NCBI RefSeq assembly: GCF_004010195.1
Contig: NC_057717.1
Location: forward strand, 27,685,580-27,745,314
From: Chiloscyllium plagiosum
Lineage: Eukaryota
Direction: 5' to 3'
Length of the DNA stretch: 59,735 bases
The translations under genes were made by a program, and so were the position numbers. A model generated the notes under the pieces. It had not been told where the DNA came from. It saw only the letters and a list, made by a program, of their open reading frames with translations, and ran no database searches. Below, in pieces: positions 11,012-52,634 of the stretch. Every line of letters starts with the position of its first letter. Position 1 is the first letter of the stretch.

Positions 11012-13130
11012 CTCCCCATATTATTCTTACGTATGTCCTCATACTGCAGTAACAAATCTTTCAACTGCGTTCTATGCTCCTGAGACAGATAGTTTACTAA
11101 CCTATCCCACTGCTCAAGGACTTCTACTTTTTAAGCATATTTTGAGGCACGTCAAAATTCGCAACGTTTGTATTTGATTCCTCACTCTGTGAGGCAGTAA
11201 CTAACACCTGTTTTTCCAATTCTTTCTCTCCTCTACTTTTCAGGAGGGGACGTACACACTCAGTTATAACCCAAAAGGAGGGGCCTTCGAATGTGGGAAT
11301 TGGCAACAGAGATGCTAGTTTAATTACTGCCTGTGGCCTACCTACTATTTGGCATGTATGACACGTTTGCCAAAAGTTAACCACATCTGTGTGCATTCCA
11401 GGTCAATAAAAATGTTTTTGTCCCTTAGCCTGAGCCTTTCGTACCACTCGGTGACCTGCCACAGGTAGTTCACGTGCTACCTGTAACACTTTCCTGTCTC
11501 TATGCCACTGGCAACATAATCTGGTGCACTTCAGCACATTACTCCTCTGCACTAACTTGCCGTAGTCTCCACTTCCTACTTAGGATGCTATATTTCTGGC
11601 AATAATCCACAGGAACATCTATGCCTCACTCTCGGAGTACGCATCCACATATATATCTTTTATCATCTTGCCTGTCTGTTGCCAATCCCTTAGCCTTTCA
11701 GGACTAAACACCTCTGTCTGATCCTCTCTTTGTTCATGATTTACCTGCACCATTACGTCAAACAGGATGTCACCTAACAGAACCTTAACTCCTTCATCGT
11801 TTTCTTATTTTGTGCTTCCTGCTGTGACTTATGAAAGTGGGATCTGGATACTGTACAGTCTGGGAAAATACCAGTATATTTCTGTTTTAACTCCTCAGTT
11901 TCTTGGTCTTCCTTGGGCTTCTACACAATGAGTGGTATCACTCCCAACTTGGACCCTTCTAAACCATTCTCAAGAACAAACTGGATTCCTGGAACTGACA
12001 CTCCGTCAGTCACTTCATCGGTTACTTCCCCAGACTTGAGTAGGCACTCCAACCTGATCTTATGTAGAGGAATGCTAAATTTCTGTCTAACTATCCCACA
12101 AATTGCGACACTCCCGGGTAACAGATCATAAAGACTGCAAATTTGCTTATCTCTTACTATTAGAAACTGGTTATATTCTGTATCTCTCAAAATGATAACT
12201 TCTTCTCCTTCTCCCCTGTTGTTTCTGAGTAGACTATACTCACAGAAGCGAATTCTTGACAGAGATCAGATACTAACTCCATACCCAGCCCGTGACTAGG
12301 CTATGCACATTCCTGCAGCTTTTCAGTTCTTGTTGGAGTTTCCTTTAATACTTTCACTAATGACACTGGCTTAACCTATTTTACCACATCTTCTCCCACA
12401 ATGCCTTTCTTAATGACCAGCACTGTGACCTTACATTTCCCATCTTATGGTAGTGGAAATACCTTTTATCATGCCCTACTGAAACCACCGGCACAGAAAT
12501 TGTCTGTGTCCCACTCCATGACAGTAAAAATACTTGAGGCCTTTCACCTCCTTTCCATTCTCTTGGGCATCTTCTTTAACCTGTGGTAAATTCTTATTCT
12601 CTACTCTTTCTTTTATACTGTAGCATCTCCCCTTCTCGCAAATTCTATCCTTCGCAGGACGAAATTCTGGCTGGAAGCTTGTCATATGCAACAACATGTA
12701 TTCATCTGCTAATTCTCCTGCTCTTCTCAATTCCTGAACTTTCTGTTCCTCAACATGAATTCTTATCATCTCTGGAAGTGAGTTCTTCAACTCCTTCAGC
12801 AGAATAATCTCCATTCGAGCCTCACATGTCGTATCTATCTTTAAAGCAAGCATCCATCTATCAAAATGCCCATGTTTAGTTCTTTCAAACTCAACCTAAG
12901 TCTGACCTGGTTCCTCCTTTATTTTACTGTACTACTATCTATATGTTTCTGGTACCAGTTTGTGAGCACTTCAAACAACTTGGTTGACGTCTTCAGAATC
13001 TCTTAACTCCTCATTTGACAGCGGAGAATATATTTCACTCACCCTACCTACCACTTTATTGCGAACTTGCATCCCCCATAAATCCTTGGACCATTCTATC
13101 TGCCTAGCCACGTCTTCAATGATAAAAGGC

Positions 13131-18751: not shown

Positions 18752-21700
18752 TGTTATGGACCAGGTCCGACCCCCCAAAACATTCTTAAGCAGATAGCAC
18801 AGACCGTAATGTTGTTCTCTGTTGAAGTTAAGTGTATAGTGGATATTCCCAGAATGAATTAGCTGGGCCGACTGCGACTTTTAAACAAACAGAATTTAAT
18901 TACTAAAGTAAGGAATGAAACACAATGAACTGAAAATACAATACCTGAATAATTCATCCTCTCCAAACTTGACAGGCGAGCACAACTTAATGATGCTGTT
19001 CCAAATGACTTGCAACAATTCCAATAAACAAACCCCTGAGTATAAAGAGTAAAACTTACATTCAATAAATTTACATGTTACATGGTCAGAGGGCTGATGG
19101 AGGGGGAAAGCGTCCAGTTTCAACAGTGACCCTGACTCAATTAACTCTCGAACTGAACTGACCTGTGCAGGTGGATAGCTGGTCACATCCCTTGAATTAC
19201 ACCAGTTTTTTTTTGTTGGAGACTTGAAAGCCTTCTGTCCGAGGTATTATTTGTTAGCTAAAAACCAAAGCACCCCAATGAAGCATTCAAAATTGAGACA
19301 TGTTGGAATCTTGGGTTGGTTAGAACATCTCTGAAAACAATTCAAGAACAACATAACCTTGAAAAGAGACCACCTTTGTGACAACTCCCCTAATATAAAA
19401 CTGAATCATCAATATCCAAAGATGTCTTCAGGTTTCAACCCCCCCCCCCCCCCAAAAAAAAAGTGGTTAGTACACTAAAATATGGATGTATATACATTTA
19501 CTATAAACATGCAAAAATGCACAACTACATCCGGATTCAGTGTGTGGTATACCCACTACTGAGTGCCTCAATCTGTCATTCAAGTGTTGACAATGCATCA
19601 ACAATCATGTTTTCAAGGCCTGCCACATGCACAATTTTCTAATTGAATAGCTGCACCAACAGGCTCCAGCAAAACAGTCTCGCATTTTTGTACTTAAATT
19701 TCTCCAAAAATGTCAATGGTTTATGATCAATGTACATGGTTNNNNNNNNNNNNNNNNNNNNNNNNNNNNNNNNNNNNNNNNNNNNNNNNNNNNNNNNNNN
19801 NNNNNNNNNNNNNNNNNNNNNNNNNNNNNNNNNNNNNNNNNNNNNNNNNNNNNNNNNNNNNNNNNNNNNNNNNNNNNATGCACAACTACATCCGGATTCA
19901 GTGTGTGGTAATCCCGTCACTGAGTGCCTCAATCTGTCATTCAAGTCTTGAAAATGCATCAACAATCATGTTTTCAAGACCTGCCACATGCACAATTTTC
20001 AAATTGAATGGCTTTAACAACAGGATCCAGCTAAACAATCTCACATTCTTGTCCTTAAATTTCTCCAAAAACGTCAATGGGTTATGATCAGTGTACATGG
20101 TTGTCTCAGATGTGTGGCTGGTAATATAAACACTGAAATGTTGCAGTGCCAACACAAAGCTCACAGTCACTTTCTCAACTGTTGAATATTTCTACCATTG
20201 AGCATTAAACTTCTCGGAGAAATACTTGATAGGTCTTTCTGTCTTCTCGTCGTTTTCCTGTAGGAGCCTAGCACCGACCCCCAAATCACTCGCATTTAAA
20301 GCCACCTTGAATGGTTTTGCATAAGCAGGTGTGGCTGATAGTGGGACAATGGTTAATACATATTTCATGCCATCCACTGTCTTTGACAGTCCTCTGTCCA
20401 CTGAAACGTCTTAACTTTCTTTAACAATTCCGTGAGTGGAGCAGTCACTTTGCGAAAATGAGGCACAAACCTACGATAAAATCTACACAATTCCAGCAAC
20501 CATAGTACTGCTCCTTCTGTCAACAGTATGGAAAATTCCCCAATTACCTTCACTTTTACATCCCATGACACTGTTTATGTATGTCCAATAGCATGGCCCA
20601 GGAAGGTGATTTGTGTTTTGCCAAATTCAATTTTTGCTCGGTTTACCACCAAGCCTTCCTTCCGAAGCCAATCAAACAAATTCGATAAATGCTGTAAATG
20701 TTCCTTCCATTACTGACTAAAATTCACCATGTCATCAATGTGCACCACACATTGGATAATCTGGTAACTTATTGGTTCGTCCCTGAAATGTGGCCGGCAC
20801 GTGTATCACACCAAATGTAAGTTGCTTGTCCCACATTTTCAACACAGTCTTCCAATCGTGGAACTGGGCATACATCAATCTTTTTAACTACATTGACTTT
20901 ACGATAGTCCACACATTTGGCTTTGGCACCATGACTATGGGTGAGTTCCAGTCACTGTAATGCACGTTGATTATGTCATCTTAGAGCATGCATTCAATCT
21001 TCTTCTGAACCTGTGCCAGCTTTAGAGGATTAAGCCCGTAAGGATGTTGCTTACTCATAACAGCATCTCCTATAGCTACATAATGCACAATTGGGTTAGT
21101 ACTTCCAAGTTAATTTCTGCTTATCTCCCCATGCAATAGTAATAACTATTTCTAGGCATTACAATTTTTCTCATAAAGGTAACTCAATCATTTATCCCAA
21201 TTTTGGACAACTACCTCATTGTCCACTTTATTTAAGGCATGCCATAATCATTAACACCTTCTCCCCTTGCTTTCCTTCCCTGTCAAAATACCTTTTGAGC
21301 ATATTCACACGACATACGCTGCGAGATGTCTTTCTGTCGGGAGTCCTTATCAAGTAGTTACCCCCACTCAATATCCTTTTTGTTTTATAAGGTCCACTAA
21401 ACCTTGCTTTTCAAGGTTCACCTATCACTGTAAGTAACAGTAATAACCTATCCCCGATAGCAAAATTGCAAATTTTAAATTTCCTGTCCGCTTCCTGTTT
21501 TACTGCCTGCTGCAATATTTGTAAATGCTCTCCAGCCAATTCCCCAGCGCTATTAATCGTTCCCAAAAATTTGAGAGACAGTCTAAAAGTGTGACCTTTG
21601 AATTCTGATTTACTACATTTTCCTTAATCAATTTCAATGGCTCAAACACTAATTCAAATCGATTGAATTTGTTCTGTTAATTTGGTGCATCCCTGATCAC

Positions 21701-24300
21701 AAAAAGCGCAAATGGAACTTCCTTATCCTAATCATCTGGATAATCCTGATCATAAGCCCTCAACATGGTCTATAATGTTTAATGTTACCTTTCTCGCGCT
21801 CCCTGCAATTTTGGATGGTACGCAGTAGATTTGAATTGCTTTGTCCCGAAGACATTATCGTGAATAATTTACATGTGAAGTTTGAACGCTTGATCTCACT
21901 GTAGCTCTATTGGTGGTCCATATCTATTTTAAAAAGGAGTAATTCCTCTGCAATTCTTTTAGCTGTGATATTGCATCTTGGGGTAGCCTCTGGAAATCTA
22001 GTCGATGCATCCATTATTGTTTACAAACACTGGTGCCGACTTTTTTTGTGTGTTCGGAGACCCACCCCATCAATTAAGACTCTTTTAAAAGGTTCCTCAA
22101 ATGCCAGAAGGGTTGAGAAAGGTGCAGGCTTTATTATCGCTTGTGTTTTTCCAATTCCCTGGCATGTATGACACGTCTGGTAAAATTCAACTACATTCTG
22201 TTGCAGTTCAGGCCAGTAAAATGTCTCTGTATTTCAGCCTCTGTTTTCTTCACTCCTAAATGACTTCTAGTTGGTAGCTTATGTACGATTCGCATCACCT
22301 CCTTTCTATACCCCATTGGCAAATTGATTTGATGAATCTCTTCCCATTTCTCATCTCCTTGACTATGTGATTGTCTCCATTTCCTTATCTGGACATCATT
22401 TTTAAGGTAATGATACTCAGGGATACATTCAAAATTCCTAACGTTTATGCTTTCTAATACAACTGGTTTAATCTTTTATCATTCTGCTGTGACTCAATTA
22501 GATTAGCTGAACTCAAAATATTTCCATGATCACCTACTTACTCCTGTTTTGTCGCAACTATCTGATGGAACAAAGTCTCTGTCAATTCCACTTAAGCTTC
22601 CTTATCTTTACATTTTTGATATTGCCTGTTTCAACTGGTAACATTTGGACCTTAAAACTCCACAATAAGGATACGACAACTGCATTGCTTCAGTTGCCTG
22701 TGTCTCCACTGGCTTTTCAATCAGAGTAGGCAGTGCTCCTACTGGTGAATCAGCTGTACTTTCCGCAAGGACAAATTGTATTCCTGGAGCTGAGAGTTTG
22801 TCCAATACCCCTACCACAATTGCTCCACACTTTTCTGGACAAGTTATCCTCGCTTTCCAAAATGTTGCACTTTTTGTTTCAAGATGAATTCCCTTTAGCA
22901 TTACATTTTCTGGAAATAGTTCTTCAGGAGTACATACCTCCTCATCTTTCAGCAGCATTGACTGAGAGGACACGGTATTCCTTAATGTTGCATCCTCTTT
23001 ACCTGCCCTGTGTGAATAAACTTTCCCTTTGCAGGAATATTTTCGAAGCAGATCTGGCACTTCCTCCTTAACAAACCTCCAATCAGTTTGTACTGTCTAA
23101 TGCAGCTTTCTAGCTTCCACTGTGCTTTCTGTCACCAGGCTTATCCCGTTTTCCTGCGTCTGTGTTTTTTTTTCTGAACCCACCAACACAGTGATTTCAT
23201 GTGTCCTAATTTGTTGCAATGAAAGCACCAGAGCTTTTTAACTTCTTTGTCTCCTTTAAGTATTTCCTTTTTACCCTGAGGAAAGTTATCGTTGTGATCT
23301 TCACCAATATCTACCTTTCCCTTTCTACGTGAGGATTTCCCTTTGACCAAATTTCTATTCATCATAGACTGAAATTGATTCTGGAAGCCAAAACAAGTTT
23401 TATAATCATTAATCACTAGTCATAATCATTAGCCACTTCAACTGCCAGTCTTGCTGTTTTAACTCTCTGCTCTTCCAAATGAGTTTGCACTATGTCAGGC
23501 AGTGAATTTTTGAACTCCTCCAAATTAATTGTTTTTCGAAGAGCATCGTAGGTTTGCTCTCTTTTTAAAGCTCTTATCCATCTATCAAAATTACTTTGTT
23601 TGTTCCATTCAAACTCAATATGTGTTTGACCTGGAACCCTCTTTAGATTGCTGAAACGTTGTCTGTAGGCTTCTGGCACAAGCTCATTTGCACATATGCC
23701 CTCTTCATACTCCCCACAACCCTCCTCTAATAGTGTTGCGAATACCTCACTAGCTCTATCTACATGTTTTGTTTGGGTCAACAAAACCCACATGGTCACT
23801 GGCCACTGAAATTGTTTAGCCACTTTCTCTGAGTGTCCATCTCTGAAGCTCAAATGCTCTCCCTTTTCCTTTCTCTCCTGCTAAAGCTAATTGTTGTTTT
23901 TTCTCTTTTCTCTGCTAAACCTATTCGTTCTCTTTCTTCCTCTTCTGATTTTAGTCGCAGCTCAAACTACTTTATTTCTGCTTCTAACTCAAGCTGTTTC
24001 ATTTGCGATTGAAGTTTAGTCATCTTCACAGATCATGATGGTCTTTGCAGCAAATTGGAATGCTGAGCTACTGCTGCAATCATCTCATCTTTCCTCACAT
24101 TAGGAGGTAGCTTTAACTCCTTTCGTCTACTAATTCTCGCTGCTTGGACTTACGTGCATTTTGTAAAACCTGCAAGGTCACTGTATCCACGTCCAAAGCA
24201 ACCTTGGTTCCTGCAAGAACCATTGCTATCTGAAGATCTCTTTACTCACCAAATCAACACACGAAATAAGAGACACTAATACCTGCCACTCGCTATCTAA
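18752..24300 (-). mobile_element. Decayed Gypsy LTR retrotransposon, Gmr1-like, copy 2 (only the 3' LTR evident)
   Basis: LTR ~18752-19383 (TGTTA...GACA); gag (ELVPEAYRQRF, EEFKNSLP, CCHC CFHCNKLGHMKSLC); protease region ~22700-23060; integrase (CHTCQ ~22160, HP..QG..ER ~21800, GPY ~21390); RT (VHIDD ~20735); RNase H (ASDLGVG, YTDHNPL, N..VDAFSRL). Confidence 0.9.
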
Positions 24301-45110: not shown

Positions 45111-47367
45111 TAGAACATAGAACAATACAGCACAGTACAGGCCCTTCGGCCCACGATGTTGTGCTGAACTTCTAACCTAGATTAAGTACCCATCCATGTA
45201 CCTATCCAATTGCTGCTTAAAGGTCACCAAAGATTCTGACTCTATCACTCCCACGGGCAGCGCATTCCATGCCCCCACCACTCTCTGGGTAAAGAACCTA
45301 CCCCTGACATCTCCCCTATACCTTCCACCCTTCACCTTAAATTTATGTCCCCTTGTAACACTCTGTTGTACCCGGGGAAAAAGTTTCTGACTGTCTACTC
45401 TATCTATTCCTCTGATCATCTTATAAACCTCTATCAAGTCACCCCTCATCCTTCGCCGTTCCAACGAGAAAAGGCCGAGAACTCTCAACCTATCCTCGTA
45501 CGACTTCCTCTCCATTCCAGGCAACATCCTGGTAAATCTTCTCTGCACCCTCTCCACAGCTTCCACATCTTTCCTAAAGTGAGGCGACCAGAACTGCACA
45601 CAGTACTTCAACTGTGGCCTAACCAAAGTCCTGTACAGCTGCAACATCACTTCACGAGTCTTGAATTCAATCCCTCTGCTAATGAATGATAATACTCCAT
45701 AGGCCTTCTTACAAACTCTATCCACCTGAGTGGCAACCTTCAAAGGTCTATGTACATAGACCCCAAGATCCCTCTGTTCCTCCACCTCGCTAAGAACCCT
45801 ACCGTTAACCCTGTATTCCGCATTCTTACTTGTTTTTCCAAAATGGACAACCTCACACTTGGCAGGGTTGAACTCCATCTGCCACTCCTCAGCCCGGCTC
45901 TGCATCATATCTAAGTCTCTTTGCAGCCGACAACAGCCCTCCTCACTATCCACAACTCCACCAATCTTCGTATCGTCTGCAAATTTACTGACCCACCCTT
46001 CGACTCCCTCATCTAAGTCATTAATAAAAATTACAAACAGCAGAGGACCCAGAACTGATGCCTGCGGAACTCCACTTGTAACTGGGCTCCAGGCTGAGTA
46101 TTTACCATCTACCACCACTCTCTGCCTTCGTCCGGTTAGCCAGTTTTCTATTGGCCAAATTTCCCTCTATCCCATGCCTCCTGAATTTCCACATAGGCCT
46201 ACCATGGGGAACCTTATCAAATGCCTTACTGAAATCCATGTACACTACATCCACTGCTCTACCTTCATCCACATGCTTGGTCACCTCCTCAAAGAATTCA
46301 GTAAGACTTGTAAGGCAAGACCTACCCTTCACAAATCCGTGCTGGCTGTCCCTAATCAAGCAGTGTCTTTCCAGATACTCATAAGTCCTATCCCTCAGTA
46401 CCCTTTCCATTACTTTGCCTACCACAGAAGTGAGACTAACAGGCCTGTAATTCCCGGGGTTATCCCTATTCCCTTTTTTGAACAGGGGCACAACATTCGC
46501 TACTCTCCAGTCCCCTGGTACCACCCCCGTTGCCAGTGAAGACGAGAAGATCATTGCCAACGGTACTGCACTTTCCTCTCTTGCTTCCCACATAATCCTA
46601 GGATATATCCCGTCAGGCCCGGGGGGCTTGTCTATCCTCAAGTTGTTCAAAATGTCCAACACATCTTCCTTCCTAACAGGTATCTCTTCTAGCTTACCAG
46701 TCCATTTCACACTCTCCTCTTCTACAATACGGTCCCTCTCGTTCGTAAATACTGAAGAGAAGTACTTGTTCAAGACCTCTCCTATCTCTTCCGACTCAAT
46801 ACACAGTCTCCCACTACTGTCCTTGATCGGATCTACCCTCGTTCTCGTCATTCTCAGGTTTCTCACATACGCATAAAATGCCTTGGGGTTATCCTTGATC
46901 CTATCCGGCAACGATTTTTCATGCCCTCTCTTAGCTCTCCTAATCCCTTTCTTCAGGTCCCTTCTGGCTATCCTGTATCCCTCCACTGCTCTGTCTGAAT
47001 CCTGTTTCCTCAACCTTATGTAAGCCTCCTTCTTCCTCTTTACCAGACATTCAACCTCTCTCGTCAACCAAGGCTCCCTCACACGACCATTTCTTTCCTG
47101 CCTGATAGGTACATACATATCATGGACACGTCGTATCTGCTCTTTGAAAAAGTTCCACATTTCCACCACATCCTTCCCTGACAGCCTATGCTCCCAACTT
47201 TTGCTCCTCAAATCCTGCCTTACAGCATCGTAATTTCCCTTCCCCAATTATAAAATATACCTTGTTGTGCGCACCTATCTCTCTCCATAACCAAGGTGAA
47301 AGTCACAGAATTGTGGTCACCATCACCAAAATGTTCACCAACTAACAAGCCCACCACTTGTCCCCGT
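45111..47367 (-). mobile_element. Young CR1 LINE ORF2 (RT nearly intact), running into the gap
   Basis: ORFs 46102-47247 (381 aa) and 45177-46118 (313 aa) cover NYRPVSLTS, QHGF, DFSKAFDKVPH, GVPQ.SVLGP, FADD, with a small deletion/frameshift near 46150. Confidence 0.97.
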
Positions 47368-47867
47368 NNNNNNNNNNNNNNNNNNNNNNNNNNNNNNNNN
47401 NNNNNNNNNNNNNNNNNNNNNNNNNNNNNNNNNNNNNNNNNNNNNNNNNNNNNNNNNNNNNNNNNNNNNNNNNNNNNNNNNNNNNNNNNNNNNNNNNNNN
47501 NNNNNNNNNNNNNNNNNNNNNNNNNNNNNNNNNNNNNNNNNNNNNNNNNNNNNNNNNNNNNNNNNNNNNNNNNNNNNNNNNNNNNNNNNNNNNNNNNNNN
47601 NNNNNNNNNNNNNNNNNNNNNNNNNNNNNNNNNNNNNNNNNNNNNNNNNNNNNNNNNNNNNNNNNNNNNNNNNNNNNNNNNNNNNNNNNNNNNNNNNNNN
47701 NNNNNNNNNNNNNNNNNNNNNNNNNNNNNNNNNNNNNNNNNNNNNNNNNNNNNNNNNNNNNNNNNNNNNNNNNNNNNNNNNNNNNNNNNNNNNNNNNNNN
47801 NNNNNNNNNNNNNNNNNNNNNNNNNNNNNNNNNNNNNNNNNNNNNNNNNNNNNNNNNNNNNNNNNNN
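47368..47867. other. Assembly gap of exactly 500 N (probably a fixed-size scaffolding gap)
   Basis: Counted N run; the other gaps are non-round (468 and 136). Confidence 0.85.
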
Positions 47868-48589
47868 CACCAGATCACAACACGGTGTGTTTGCAGCAGA
47901 ACTCGCTCTGCAAACATTTTCAATAGAACCAAGAACATGATGCAACCTCACAAAAACAGCAAACTAATGATTAAATTGAATAGAAATAACAAGTCATAAC
48001 AGCAGCCTTGTTTGTGAGGGGACTTAACACTTAAAGCTGTAACGTTTCTGGCAACAGTTCAATTTATTTCCAACCTGTACACCCTTCCTGATCGTGACAA
48101 TCTTGTGCAGCGCACAGTAGGGCGGTTGAAGGCATATATTGATTAATCACTTCATGGTCAAACCAAAATTACTGAATGGACAAATATTACCACATTATAA
48201 TTTTAAGTTAGTTTCAATTACATAATCTGACCAATTCTGTAGTTTCAGATTTTAGTCCCAAATTTTATTTTGAATGAGGCTACTCAAAACAAAATTCAGT
48301 TAGTTTACAATTAGAACTGAGTTTTGTTTTTAAAAGTCAATGCATTAAAAACTCGTTTTTTTCATTTCTCACACTTCCGGGTTTCTGCCTTAAGTTGTTT
48401 TTCAGACCGTTACAAATGGATGTAATGTTTTCAATCAAGCAGAGAAAAATGTGTCATATAAGTTTAACAAATGCAGAAATGATTCATGAAAAACCAAAGA
48501 ACTTCACAAACATTGGTAATGAAAAGTAATCCAGAGAGTCAATCTCCTCACCAGAAAGAAAACACCGATTACAGAAAGCATAAAAACGC

Positions 48590-48905
48590 TGATCAATTTC
48601 ACAAACTGAATAAGATCCAATCAACTCAATTCAACAGAATCAAGGAAAATAAAATCAGAATCCAATCAACTCAAAACAACAGATTTGAATGAAACATAAT
48701 CAGAATCCAAACAATTCAATTCAACAGAATCAAATAAAACAATTTCAAAAGCCAATCAACACAATTCAACAAAACCAAGTAAAAACAAAGTCAGAATCCA
48801 ATCAACACAGTTCAAACCGAATCAACCAAAACAAAGCCAAAATCCAATCAACTCAATTCAACAGAATCAAGTAAAACAAACTCAGAATCTAATCAACAGA
48901 ATGCA
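48590..48905. repeat. ~44-bp degenerate tandem repeat (6-7 copies) in the IgH J-C intron
   Basis: Recurrent aatccaatcaactcaattcaacagaatcaa...aaaacaaa.tcag; strongly A/C-skewed on the + strand. Confidence 0.9.
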
Positions 48906-49416
48906 ATATAGCAACAAAATTTTATGACAGTTTCTAACCTGCTTGTCATCAACTAATCAACTAATTAACAAAATAAATGCGAAAATATAATCAGGGTAAG
49001 AACATACATTCAAGAAATTAATAATGATATTTTAGCATATTTTAATCATGTTTAGTAATGTCTCGAACATCTTTGATTTCTTAGCGTTTGTTGTTGATAA
49101 TAAAACTCACAGTCAGGTTGTCACTGACATTAACCATTATTTATAGCTGACTGATTAAGAGACATTAGGCGTTTCAAGTAACCCAGCCACACAGAATGCC
49201 CATCTGAACAAAAAAAGAGATACACCGAGCAACTGACTCCATCATCCCCATTGTAACTATTTGCTGAGCCTTAACTGAAGTCTGTAATCAATCTGAACAA
49301 AAATCAATCCGAACCAAACCAAACTCAGCACAGAATCTGAGTTTCATTTAATTCAAAAATTAGTCACATGAATAGAAAGTTTTTAAAAAGTCACTAAGAA
49401 AGTTCAAGGGTCTTAC

Positions 49417-49466
49417 CTCAAGTCACTGTCACCATGGTCCCTTGGCCCCAGTCATCAAGTTCGTAC
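49417..49466 (-). pseudogene. IGHJ: Immunoglobulin heavy chain J segment with in-frame stop
   Basis: G TAC GAA CTT GAT GAC TGG GGC CAA GGG ACC ATG GTG ACA GTG ACT TGA G|GTAAGA = YELDDWGQGTMVTVT*; WGQG motif, donor at 49416, TGA at 49420-49418. Confidence 0.93.
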
Positions 49467-49505
49467 CACAGTGTTACATCCTCTGGACTGGGTCACACAA
49501 TAACT
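49467..49505 (+). promoter_or_regulatory. 23-spacer recombination signal sequence of JH
   Basis: CACAGTG (49467-49473), 23 nt, ACAATAACT (49497-49505). Confidence 0.95.
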
Positions 49506-49832
49506 AGCTCTGTATAAAACAAATCAAAAATCTGCCATCGTTTTAAATTTTCAGAACCACAGACAAAATAATGTCACGATAAATCTTCATCACATAATTG
49601 CGCTAGTGAATTCTGAACATTCTTGATTAATGTTAATACTGTTTTATACTTCACAGAGTAACACATGAGCTGATTCTCAAAATCCCCAACTGGTGTATCA
49701 ATAATTACCCAACACTTTTACAAATTAAATAGTGATACTGGCATTAAACCGCACAGAACTAATACTGCTCTGCAAGTTAAGACGGTTTGTAGAAGTAATC
49801 ACTGACTAGTTTGAAACAATGGAGGCTGACTA

Positions 49833-49860
49833 GGGTTTTGTATTGGTCATAATTGCAGTG
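49833..49860 (-). promoter_or_regulatory. 12-spacer RSS 3' of the joined V-D(-D)
   Basis: CACTGCA (49860-49854), ATTATGACCAAT (12 nt), ACAAAACCC (49841-49833). Confidence 0.85.
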
Positions 49861-50187
49861 TCAACCCAGTTGTACCCATGAGCTCTCTTGCACAGTAATA
49901 GATGGCGGTGTCTTCGATCTTCAGGTTCTCCATGTCCAACGCGAAAATGCTGTTTGAAGTGTCTTTGGACGCAGTAAATCGACCCTTAATCGCTGGTGCA
50001 TAGTTATTGCTGTTTGAATTATAGTAGTACAGCAGCCACTCCAGACCCTGTCCGGGAACCTGTCGGACCCAGTGCATGGTGTAGCTGCCAAGATTGAAGC
50101 CGCTGGTTTTACAGGTCAGTTTCAGGCTGCCTGCGGGACGGCCAGTCTCTGCCTCTGGCTGGGTCAAAACAACCTCCGACTGGACAC
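49861..50187 (-). CDS. IGHV: Shark IgM-type VH exon pre-joined to D-derived sequence (germline-joined VDD)
   Basis: Acceptor tttaaag|GT; [51 protein letters not shown]...RFTASKD...[18 protein letters not shown]; both Cys and the core Trp intact; no RSS directly after CAR. Confidence 0.95.
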
Positions 50188-50314
50188 CTTTAAAAAGAAA
50201 ACAAATAAACCATGAGCATTAATGCTGATGAAATGATGGCTGAGTCTTTTATATTCCTGCGGTAGACGAACATTGAGACAGTCACAAAGAGAGACTTGAA
50301 CAAAAAACACTCAC

Positions 50315-50363
50315 ATGATAAGAAAGTCAGCAACAAACTGAGAAAAGGTGTCGACACAATCAT
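50315..50363 (-). CDS. IGHV: IgH V leader exon
   Basis: MIVSTPFLSLLLTFLS + T|GTGAGT donor; 127-nt phase-1 intron (50314-50188) restores Cys-Val-Gln-Ser. Confidence 0.93.
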
Positions 50364-50449
50364 TCTGATAACTTGTGGGAAGCGGTTCTGCTAAGATCTT
50401 TCTAAACAGATCCGACCCAGGAGTGTTGAATTACGGTCCAGTGCCCAGG

Positions 50450-50457
50450 ATTTATAT
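50450..50457 (-). promoter_or_regulatory. TATA box of the VH promoter
   Basis: ATATAAAT about 90 bp upstream of the leader ATG. Confidence 0.7.
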
Positions 50458-52634
50458 GGCCATCGGAAGGGGCAGGCTTACAGCTTCCGCATGTTGGTTT
50501 CCTGCTGGAGGCTCAGACTGGATCCTGGTATCAGCTTGCACAGCCCGAACACATGGGGTCATGTTTTTACATGAGGTTCTGCTTACACATGGACACATAC
50601 ACATCTTGGGATAGTGGTTTTGCTGAATAGCTTTTTGGAAGTAAATTTGAGTGGCTTCAGGTCTGTTTCACATGATAGTTGCACGTATTTTGTTTAAAAA
50701 AAAACAAATTCAACTGGAAGTTAGCTCCCTTTATTTCTACATTCATTCACACGCGGATAAAACTAAAATTAAAGTTCAAACATATAACTAGCTAATAAAA
50801 CAGTTGAGCTTTTCTTCCCTGGATACTGCAAGTCTCTGTCGCACTCAAAATAACATGTAATTCATACTAAACATTTCAAAATTCAATTTAGGCAACTGAA
50901 TACAGAGCGTGTCCAAAGTGATTATACTTAGAATATTCAATTAGAAGTTAATTCCCTTTAATCCTACATGCCACCACAAGCAGATAAAGCTAAAAAGAAC
51001 TTCAATAATATTATTAGCCAAAAAAGTGAATGACTTTATTTTTGCTGTCACTCAAAGTCTCTCTCACATTACAAAATAACATACCATTTCTAATCTGGGT
51101 TTCTAAATTCAGTTTCAGCAACCTAATATAGAGCATGTCTAAAGTGATTATGTTCAGAATGTGAGTGTATGTCACTAAACAGTTTGGACCCGGAGATTAG
51201 AAGCACCTCCTTACATTGCAGAATGTCTCTCCCTGCATCTTTTTTTTCAAATTGCTCCGACACTAAAATGCACAGTAAAGGAAAGCTGTGTGCCTGAGAA
51301 ACAAAATGTGAGTCCGCAGTGATACACAACACCGAGGTAAACTTTTGAAAGAGCGTCTAATGAACTAGAACAAAACAGTCCATAAGTTTTTTTTTTTAAA
51401 TCCTCAATGTCTAAACCATTGCCTGTAACAGTCTGGGTACATCAGGAATGTTTTGTTAAATTAGAGAGTATTACAGTAATAATTACCACGAATGTAGGTT
51501 ATAAACAGTACATTTCTCTGCTCACTGATAGCTCTGACAGGGCAGTTAACTCATTAAAATCAGCAAAAATTCGCTGTTACACTACACCAGTGTTAACCAT
51601 GTATAAAGGGCCCACTCAGTTTTAATGAGATACATGAATCAGAGAATGGTGTAACAAGTGATGTGAGTTTGAACCAATTCAATTTTGTTAATTTACTTTG
51701 AGATGATAACAAATGTTACTGCAATGTGGGATTTTGGATCCATTAACTTCATATGCAGGAGCTTTAAAGATACACAATAAACAGACTGAACCAACCAGAA
51801 CGTCATTGCATTCAATGTTCTGTTTTCTGATAGTCATACAGTGAATGCTGTATTCAGTGACTTTCCTTTTAAAGGGAGAAATGCCAAGTGAAATGTATTC
51901 ATTGTGAGTAAATGGGAAAATATAATTTGTTTGGTAGGACTTTATTTTAGTTGATTCATTTTCCCTTTAATCGTCCCGATACAATAGTTGCCAGCAATTA
52001 AGCTGACTGCAGAAAAGGTCATTGAGTTCCCAGTTTCATTTACTGGAAGCAGGTGGAGTTTCCGTAGTGGATCAGAGATATTTTGTCTCACTGTTGACCA
52101 GTTGGTGGAAAGCCAACTGCAAAACATAACCACCGCCTCCGCAGAAACAAATCGACTCAGCAACAATACTGGAGAAACGTTTATTTTCAGTTGTGTAACT
52201 TGGAGAACTAGTCACTCCTCTCATTGAAGGAAATATTCGCAAAGTCTCAGACACAACCTTAACATCAACAGTTCATTCAAGGATCACTACAGCACTGTTT
52301 AATATTGAGAAAAATTGATAAACAGTAATAGAGTCATGTAGTGATACAGCATGGTTACAGACCCTTCGGTCCAACCAGTCCATGCCAGTCATAATCCCAA
52401 ACTAAACTAATCCCACCTGTGTGTACTTGGCCCATATCCTTCCAAACATTTGATATTCATTTAGTGATCCAAATGTCTTCGAAAGGTTGTAAGTATCCAC
52501 CACCCAATCATCCCACACACAAACCATTCTCTGTATAAAAGGTTGTCTCTGATATCCTGTTTAAAATTTTTCGCCTCTCATTGGAAAAACATGTTCCCTA
52601 TTGTTGAAATCCCCCACTATAGGGAAAGTACACC

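Follow-up and report, generated by a model that had tools for sequence, protein, structure and literature searches.

Why a heavy-chain variable (V) segment should run directly into diversity (D)-derived bases in a shark assembly, while its joining (J) segment still stands apart, is the question raised by a locus of the bamboo shark Chiloscyllium plagiosum. The locus lies in a stretch of 59,735 nt (NC_057717.1, positions 27,685,580 to 27,745,314; the window). In sharks, the germline state of heavy-chain clusters has long been known to vary from unrearranged through partly rearranged to rearranged. The locus described here is probably a germline VDD-J join of an immunoglobulin (Ig) M-type minicluster, now an orphan and most likely a pseudogene. 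Relatives from two organisms, whose contigs are 97%–98% identical to the locus, carry the same segments in unjoined form and so allow the ends of the fused segments to be placed.

Structure of the Joined Segments

The stretch under study was read on the minus strand, and all positions follow the numbering of the window. V exon 2 (50187-49884) comprises the end of the leader and an open heavy-chain V (VH) reading to ...YYCAR(E), with the canonical Cys, Trp and YYC; Pfam assigns it to V-set (E 3.2e-17). Its 3′ end reads ...TGTGCAAGAGA and is followed by a 20-nt junction, GCTCATGGGTACAACTGGGT (49883-49864), which separates it from a D2 remnant, TGA (49863-49861), the last 3 nt of D2; contigs of the relatives match up to 49863. 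The 3′ recombination signal sequence (RSS) of D2, a 12-RSS (49860-49833), consists of the heptamer CACTGCA (49860-49854), a 12-nt spacer and the nonamer ACAAAACCC (49841-49833), and agrees with the consensus at 4/7 and 8/9 positions, respectively. An intersegment of 327 nt (49832-49506), colinear with a contig of a relative (record 30 of run X6, below), leads to the 23-RSS of JH (49505-49467), in which the nonamer AGTTATTGT, a 23-nt spacer and the heptamer CACTGTG (49473-49467) are found; here the heptamer matches the consensus at 7/7 positions and the nonamer at 7/9. JH itself (49466-49417), YELDDWGQGTMVTVT followed by a stop, contains the WGQGT motif and an in-frame TGA (49420-49418), and is adjoined by the splice donor GTAAGA. 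No RSS lies between V and the D-derived bases, and the D2 3′ 12-RSS and the J 23-RSS are retained. A first-pass annotation of this DNA had listed a TATA-like box, split leader, open VH, junction, 12-RSS, ∼327 bp, 23-RSS and JH, and all were found where it had placed them.

A loose RSS scan of the window returned 15 matches, versus 4.0 ± 2.1 in shuffles, and because such matches are common, RSS-likeness alone is a weak argument. What carries the case is the correctly oriented position of these two signals, each next to a coding end, together with the relatives. Two further 12-RSS-like matches were observed 3′ of J on the plus strand (48806-48833 and 49108-49135; heptamer 6/7, nonamer 7/9); their orientation is opposite and they fall within the chance range.

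Relatives with Unjoined Segments

Among the 24 public sequencing runs compared, 20 hold part of the stretch, the best share of sampled words being 0.49. Positions 48000-52000 were compared with the contigs of four runs: X1 and X4 (organism A), X6 (organism B, DNA-like) and X17 (organism A, RNA-like). The comparison was made by contigs and not by reads, and contigs drop rare variants; X1 and X4 have a depth of hundreds to thousands and very short contigs, and no copy numbers were drawn from them.

A close relative is seen in X6, where eight contigs at a flat depth of ∼11, as for a single copy, tile 48000-51973. They differ from the window at 89 of 3983 letters (2.2%), with 17 gaps, and colinearity is interrupted only at 49864-49883. 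On the V side, record 31 (1759 nt) matches 51333-49884 and continues into an overhang of 307 nt that starts with C, CACAGCG and AGAGGAACC. On the D2 side, record 30 (1066 nt) matches 49285-49863, with 18 other letters in 579, and continues into an overhang of 489 nt. Taken on the gene strand and with the shared TGA added, the visible part of this overhang gives the heptamer CACAGTG and then ATATAGCTGGAGTGA, a free D2. The free D2 of the relative has its last three bases, 12-RSS, spacer and J in common with the window. The same two loose ends were observed in X17, and the V-side loose end also in X1. A gene model of C. punctatum, P0001, reads ...CARD-HSERS, which is the same heptamer after V.

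Since V in the relatives is followed by a heptamer of its own, and their D2 stands free with the same 3′ signal, both ends of the fused segment are fixed. As judged from these alignments, the last base of V is 49884, so that one base of the coding end found in the relatives is missing, and D2 is trimmed to TGA (49863-49861). The 20 bases at 49883-49864 belong to neither flank, the relatives’ contigs diverging on both sides. Two simpler accounts of the locus were rejected. The first, that this 3′ end with its 12-RSS is the normal end of an unrearranged V, had been named in the first-pass annotation as an alternative that paralogues could reveal, and it is ruled out by the relatives and P0001, in which the heptamer comes directly after V. 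The second, a retrocopy or processed cDNA, had already been excluded there from the leader intron and promoter; the leader intron and 5′ flank are indeed retained, and the window is colinear with the relatives for ∼1.6 kb 5′ of the ATG (to 51973) and for 1.4 kb 3′ of J (to 48000).

Three other contigs deserve mention. In one from X1 (depth 9.3), 49706 and 49888 are linked across letters that could not be read; it might be a joined paralogue. One from X17 of 491 nt (49601-49863) spans the unjoined D2 and spacer at a depth of ∼10, and could represent sterile transcripts of unrearranged clusters, or library DNA. Also in X17, the J of a relative is spliced to the start of the first exon of the μ constant region (C-mu1), with a loose end at 49420.

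Content of the Junction

The last 15 coding bases of the window match the D2 of the relatives at 9/15 positions. This is far below the 98% found elsewhere, so these bases are not simply D2. By colinearity with the relatives, the contribution of D2 to the fused segment is 3 nt, and the 20-base junction contains a 12-nt D-like core, GGTACAACTGGG. The 20 bases would then represent nontemplated (N) additions and D1, giving VD1D2-J.

A junction made without D1 is unlikely. In that case a trimmed D2 would have been attached to V directly, with N additions, or D1 would have been lost by another deletion, leaving V(N)D2-J. Just 3 nt are assignable to D2, and the germline D1 of this cluster type was not seen in the 30 visible letters of each overhang, both of which leave room for such an event. 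The 12-nt D-like core within the 20 bases speaks against it. The D2 5′ signal of shark clusters has a 22/23 spacer, and if this applies here, V could not be joined directly to D2 without violating the 12/23 rule.

In the VD1D2-J interpretation, RAG-type recombination in the germ line would have fused V to D1 and D1 to D2. The fusion would have removed the 23-RSS of V, both D1 signals, the D2 5′ signal and ∼0.7–0.8 kb of spacer. The expected product is V (minus 1 nt), ∼20 nt of N and D1 bases and 3 nt of D2; the D2 3′ 12-RSS, the 327-bp spacer and JH with its 23-RSS would lie next to it on the 3′ side. RAG is the inferred agent of these joins.

Related Proteins and Gene Models

The nearest named proteins are VH models of C. 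punctatum (90% for P0001, and 81%), followed by Heterodontus HV01 (76%), Scyliorhinus torazame (75%) and Rhincodon (72%); no protein identical to this V was present in the protein collection compared. The nearest of these point to a bamboo shark, family Hemiscylliidae, as the bearer of the minicluster. In two C. punctatum models, P0003 (...YYCTRAVGSWI-VTAIMIDTKT...) and P0010 (...YYCGVYYSNWAV-ALQL-stop), the reading frame passes from V across D-like codons and enters the heptamer and spacer found here. Judging by these translations, the second bamboo-shark assembly seems to hold further clusters of the VDD-J type. A Rhincodon model, P0007, looks like a fully joined VDJ.

Probable Loss of Function

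The last full codon of J in the WGQGT frame is TGA (49420-49418); in each of the four runs, every contig that covers this codon has TCA instead (49419). Other changes set the window apart from its relatives. At 49835 in the 12-RSS nonamer the window has C (A>C), and all four runs give a perfect nonamer, ACAAAAACC. Leader residue 6 (50347) is Pro in the window, the codon being Leu in all covering contigs of the four runs, and the leader of P0001 equals that of the window except for L in place of this P. In framework region 3 (FR3), the conserved NNIF motif shows a window-private N>S (49950).

No C-mu exon was found within the 49.4 kb 3′ of J, the search for C-mu2 to C-mu4 having used motifs, visual inspection and a Pfam scan of 20 open reading frames (ORFs), not a homologue. 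Regex and visual scans revealed no Ig C domain in any stop-free segment of the window, C1-set gave 0 matches in the 20 ORFs scanned with Pfam, and tblastn with a catshark J-C-mu1 protein (P0064) matched V and J alone, with no C-mu1. A splice motif for J/C-mu1, derived from a contig of X17, has 0 matches in the window with ≤3 mismatches. In nurse shark, C-mu1 is placed 6.3–6.8 kb from J in the part of the report available (PMC2435157). The DNA 3′ of J in the window is mostly debris of long interspersed nuclear elements (LINEs) and long terminal repeat (LTR) retroelements. About 1.5 kb 3′ of J lies a LINE-type retroelement (45180-47951, minus strand) with two reverse transcriptase ORFs (RVT_1, E 6.9e-13 and 5e-12), and a run of 500 N lies inside the 5′ ORF of this element.

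These data also bear on the possibility that the locus is functional, a VDD-J cluster joined in the germ line with part of its third complementarity-determining region fixed, whose C-mu would lie beyond the window or have been displaced by retroelements or misassembly, the TGA being an error or a null allele. The open V, the splice sites and both RSS would suit such a gene, as would the limits of the window, whose end lies 49.4 kb 3′ of J and which includes three N runs. Shark Ig genes joined in the germ line can, moreover, be expressed early in life, according to the parts consulted of two reports (PMC2193156; PMC5192425). Against this stand the in-frame TGA in J and the private changes in leader, FR3 and nonamer, the absence of C-mu1 from 49.4 kb where 6–7 kb is usual, and the position of the 500-N run within a LINE ORF, and a working cluster is considered improbable. 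Because of the TGA in J, the lack of C-mu in 49.4 kb and the private changes, the locus is most likely an orphan pseudogene without a C region; that this copy has lost its function is deduced from these defects. The remaining 12/23 step is formally possible but could not yield a heavy chain. The first-pass annotation had described an antibody gene frozen part-way through recombination, which implies a working cluster. Its VDD-J anatomy stands, the relatives being unjoined and the V and D2 ends fixed; the sense of a poised gene does not, and a dead, C-less relic takes its place.

Germline or Somatic Origin

The join is very probably of germline origin. Several points nevertheless weigh against a germline VDD-J join that has since decayed. 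There is no read-level proof of the junction, and no run contains >0.49 of the sampled words; among the contigs listed for the four runs, none bridges 49864-49883. At 25 of 40 variant places among those listed, the letter of the window is absent from all contigs that cover the place, in each of the covered runs. The window’s own allele was not seen in the four runs compared, and the source species or individual may be outside these runs. All relatives seen are unjoined, including those from organism A. In nurse shark, somatic VDD-J intermediates are common in thymocytes, occur also in B cells and can be hypermutated there, as stated in the accessible portion of PMC2435157. The 12-RSS heptamer is weak, with only 4/7 positions as in the consensus. 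The D1 contribution is read from the D-like core rather than from a germline D1 sequence, and the search for C-mu2 to C-mu4 covered motifs, visual scans and Pfam on the 20 ORFs. The assembly has three N runs of odd sizes in the window; local quality is uncertain, and an allele or a sequence error could account for the TGA.

The frequency of this partial configuration in thymocytes, the lack of a confirming run and the unjoined state of all relatives compared are what would be expected if a somatic intermediate of a lymphocyte or thymocyte had been taken up into the assembly, or if the junction were an assembly artefact, the germ line being unjoined only. Such an origin is nonetheless given a low probability. 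An assembler would be expected to follow the majority of reads, and any one junction should account for very few of the reads from any tissue. The J of this locus is dead and a C region is lacking, and similar gene models with V, D and 12-RSS occur in the independent C. punctatum assembly. The differences from the relatives also extend over the whole 4 kb, including 50752-51792, from >300 nt to 1.4 kb 5′ of the ATG. Somatic hypermutation does not act that far 5′ of the promoter. Because the changes are spread in this manner, they are not the result of hypermutation, and a hypermutated B-cell copy was rejected.

The 5′ Coding End of J

In the relatives, the heptamer of J is followed by ACTATCTTGATTACTGGGG (YLDYWG). 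In the window it is followed by GT and ACGAACTTGATGACTGGGG, with the two extra bases GT (49466-49465) exactly at the RAG cut site and forming the palindrome of the relatives’ J end (AC...). Neither X6 nor X17 has the extra GT, and both differ from the window at 49453, 49460 and 49462. These three substitutions fall within 12 bases after GT, against a background of 2.2%, making this the most changed spot.

The GT may be a 2-nt palindromic (P) insertion in an open-and-shut joint. The locus would then keep the scars of three germ-line RAG synapses, of which V-D1 and D1-D2 were joined and the third aborted; we regard this as doubtful. An open-and-shut joint leaves the three substitutions unexplained, and a J patch copied from another cluster fits them better. 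If true, an open-and-shut scar beside a split relative diverged by only ∼2% would amount to a direct fossil record that RAG had recently cut, and hairpins had been opened, at a shark germ-line heavy-chain locus.

Promoter, Leader and Surrounding Sequence

A candidate TATA-like box, CATATAAA (50458-50451, minus strand), read from the sequence, lies 88–95 nt 5′ of the ATG. The octamer ATGCAAAT gave 0 matches with ≤1 mismatch across 48691-52466, from which no inference was drawn, the promoters of the relatives not being comparable. Leader exon 1 (50363-50315), MIVSTPFLSLLLTFLS plus 1 nt, begins with the ATG at 50363 and is followed by a GT..AG leader intron of 127 nt (50314-50188). For a related V in the RNA-like run X17, a spliced contig skips exactly these 127 nt (joint 50184>50312, cut +3). 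A tandem pair of ∼227-bp units, 71% alike, was observed at 50708-50934 and 50935-51160, 350–800 nt 5′ of the V start codon.

On the 3′ side, the donor GTAAGA and the first 1.4 kb of the J-C intron (49416-48000), as in working clusters, are tiled by X6 records 25-30 at single-copy depth. The window contains no second V, as tblastn with its own V matched only itself; in the 20 ORFs, Pfam found V-set once, the others giving RVT_1, SCAN, RNase H, integrase or nothing. Remains of LTR retroelements, all on the minus strand and assigned by Pfam, comprise SCAN-like gag (23419-23880 and 12479-12895), RNase H (19940-20191) and an integrase zinc domain (11127-11402).

Comparison with Known Germline Joins

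That the phenomenon itself is familiar, as the first-pass annotation had supposed, is borne out by the literature. VD- and VDD-joined shark heavy-chain genes have been published (PMC2193156, in part), and the section available of another report lists VD-J, VD-DJ and VDJ configurations (PMC5192425). For C. plagiosum, 37 IgM clusters have been counted, according to the portion available of PMC8692893. No published description of the segment configuration of bamboo-shark IgM clusters was found, supplementary files being outside the search.

The VD-J, VD-DJ and VDD clusters of horned shark and other cartilaginous fish likewise have V fused to D-derived bases, with the leader intron retained and the remaining RSS pair intact. 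In contrast to joined clusters of the horned-shark type, the bamboo-shark copy has no C-mu within 49 kb and a stop in J. It also has a split relative that is ∼2% diverged, whereas PMC2193156 states that for heavy chains pairs this close were lacking. There, joined and split heavy-chain genes are described as too divergent, and their junctions as too varied, to be dissected, and expression of the joined horned-shark heavy-chain genes is given as not detected.

Light-chain genes are treated in the same text (PMC2193156, in part), which showed the joined genes to be recent derivatives of split ones, produced by RAG-like processing. In the joined NS4 light-chain genes of nurse shark (R4, R7 and others), joined and split pairs are up to 99% identical and the RSS are cleanly removed. 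Their joints show trimming and possible P or N bases, taken as RAG activity in germ cells (PMC2193156, as far as available). The NS4 genes are light-chain VJ, fully joined, with 4/6 in frame and expressed in pups; the window, by comparison, holds a heavy chain with 2/3 joins made, which is probably dead.

Somatic VDD-J intermediates of nurse shark do not differ from it in configuration: V, D1 and D2 are fused, and the D2 12-RSS and the J 23-RSS remain (PMC2435157, in the part available). They arise in single lymphoid cells at working clusters, whereas the locus in the window is an assembly consensus, diverged and without a C region. The VH pseudogenes of chicken are likewise germline V-D fusions without a C region, for which an origin by germ-cell RAG activity has been proposed (PMC2193156, in part). 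Unlike the bamboo-shark copy, which has both, they are without leader and RSS, and they serve as gene-conversion donors, a use not known for this copy.

The gene is most likely dead, with a stop in J and no C region; the locus adds one example rather than a new principle, the useful extra being its close split relative. With an unjoined relative ∼98% alike, each base of the junction would become assignable once D1 is known, and the event could be dated. Germline-joined shark Ig genes are the main evidence for the action of RAG in germ cells, reshaping antigen-receptor loci in evolution.

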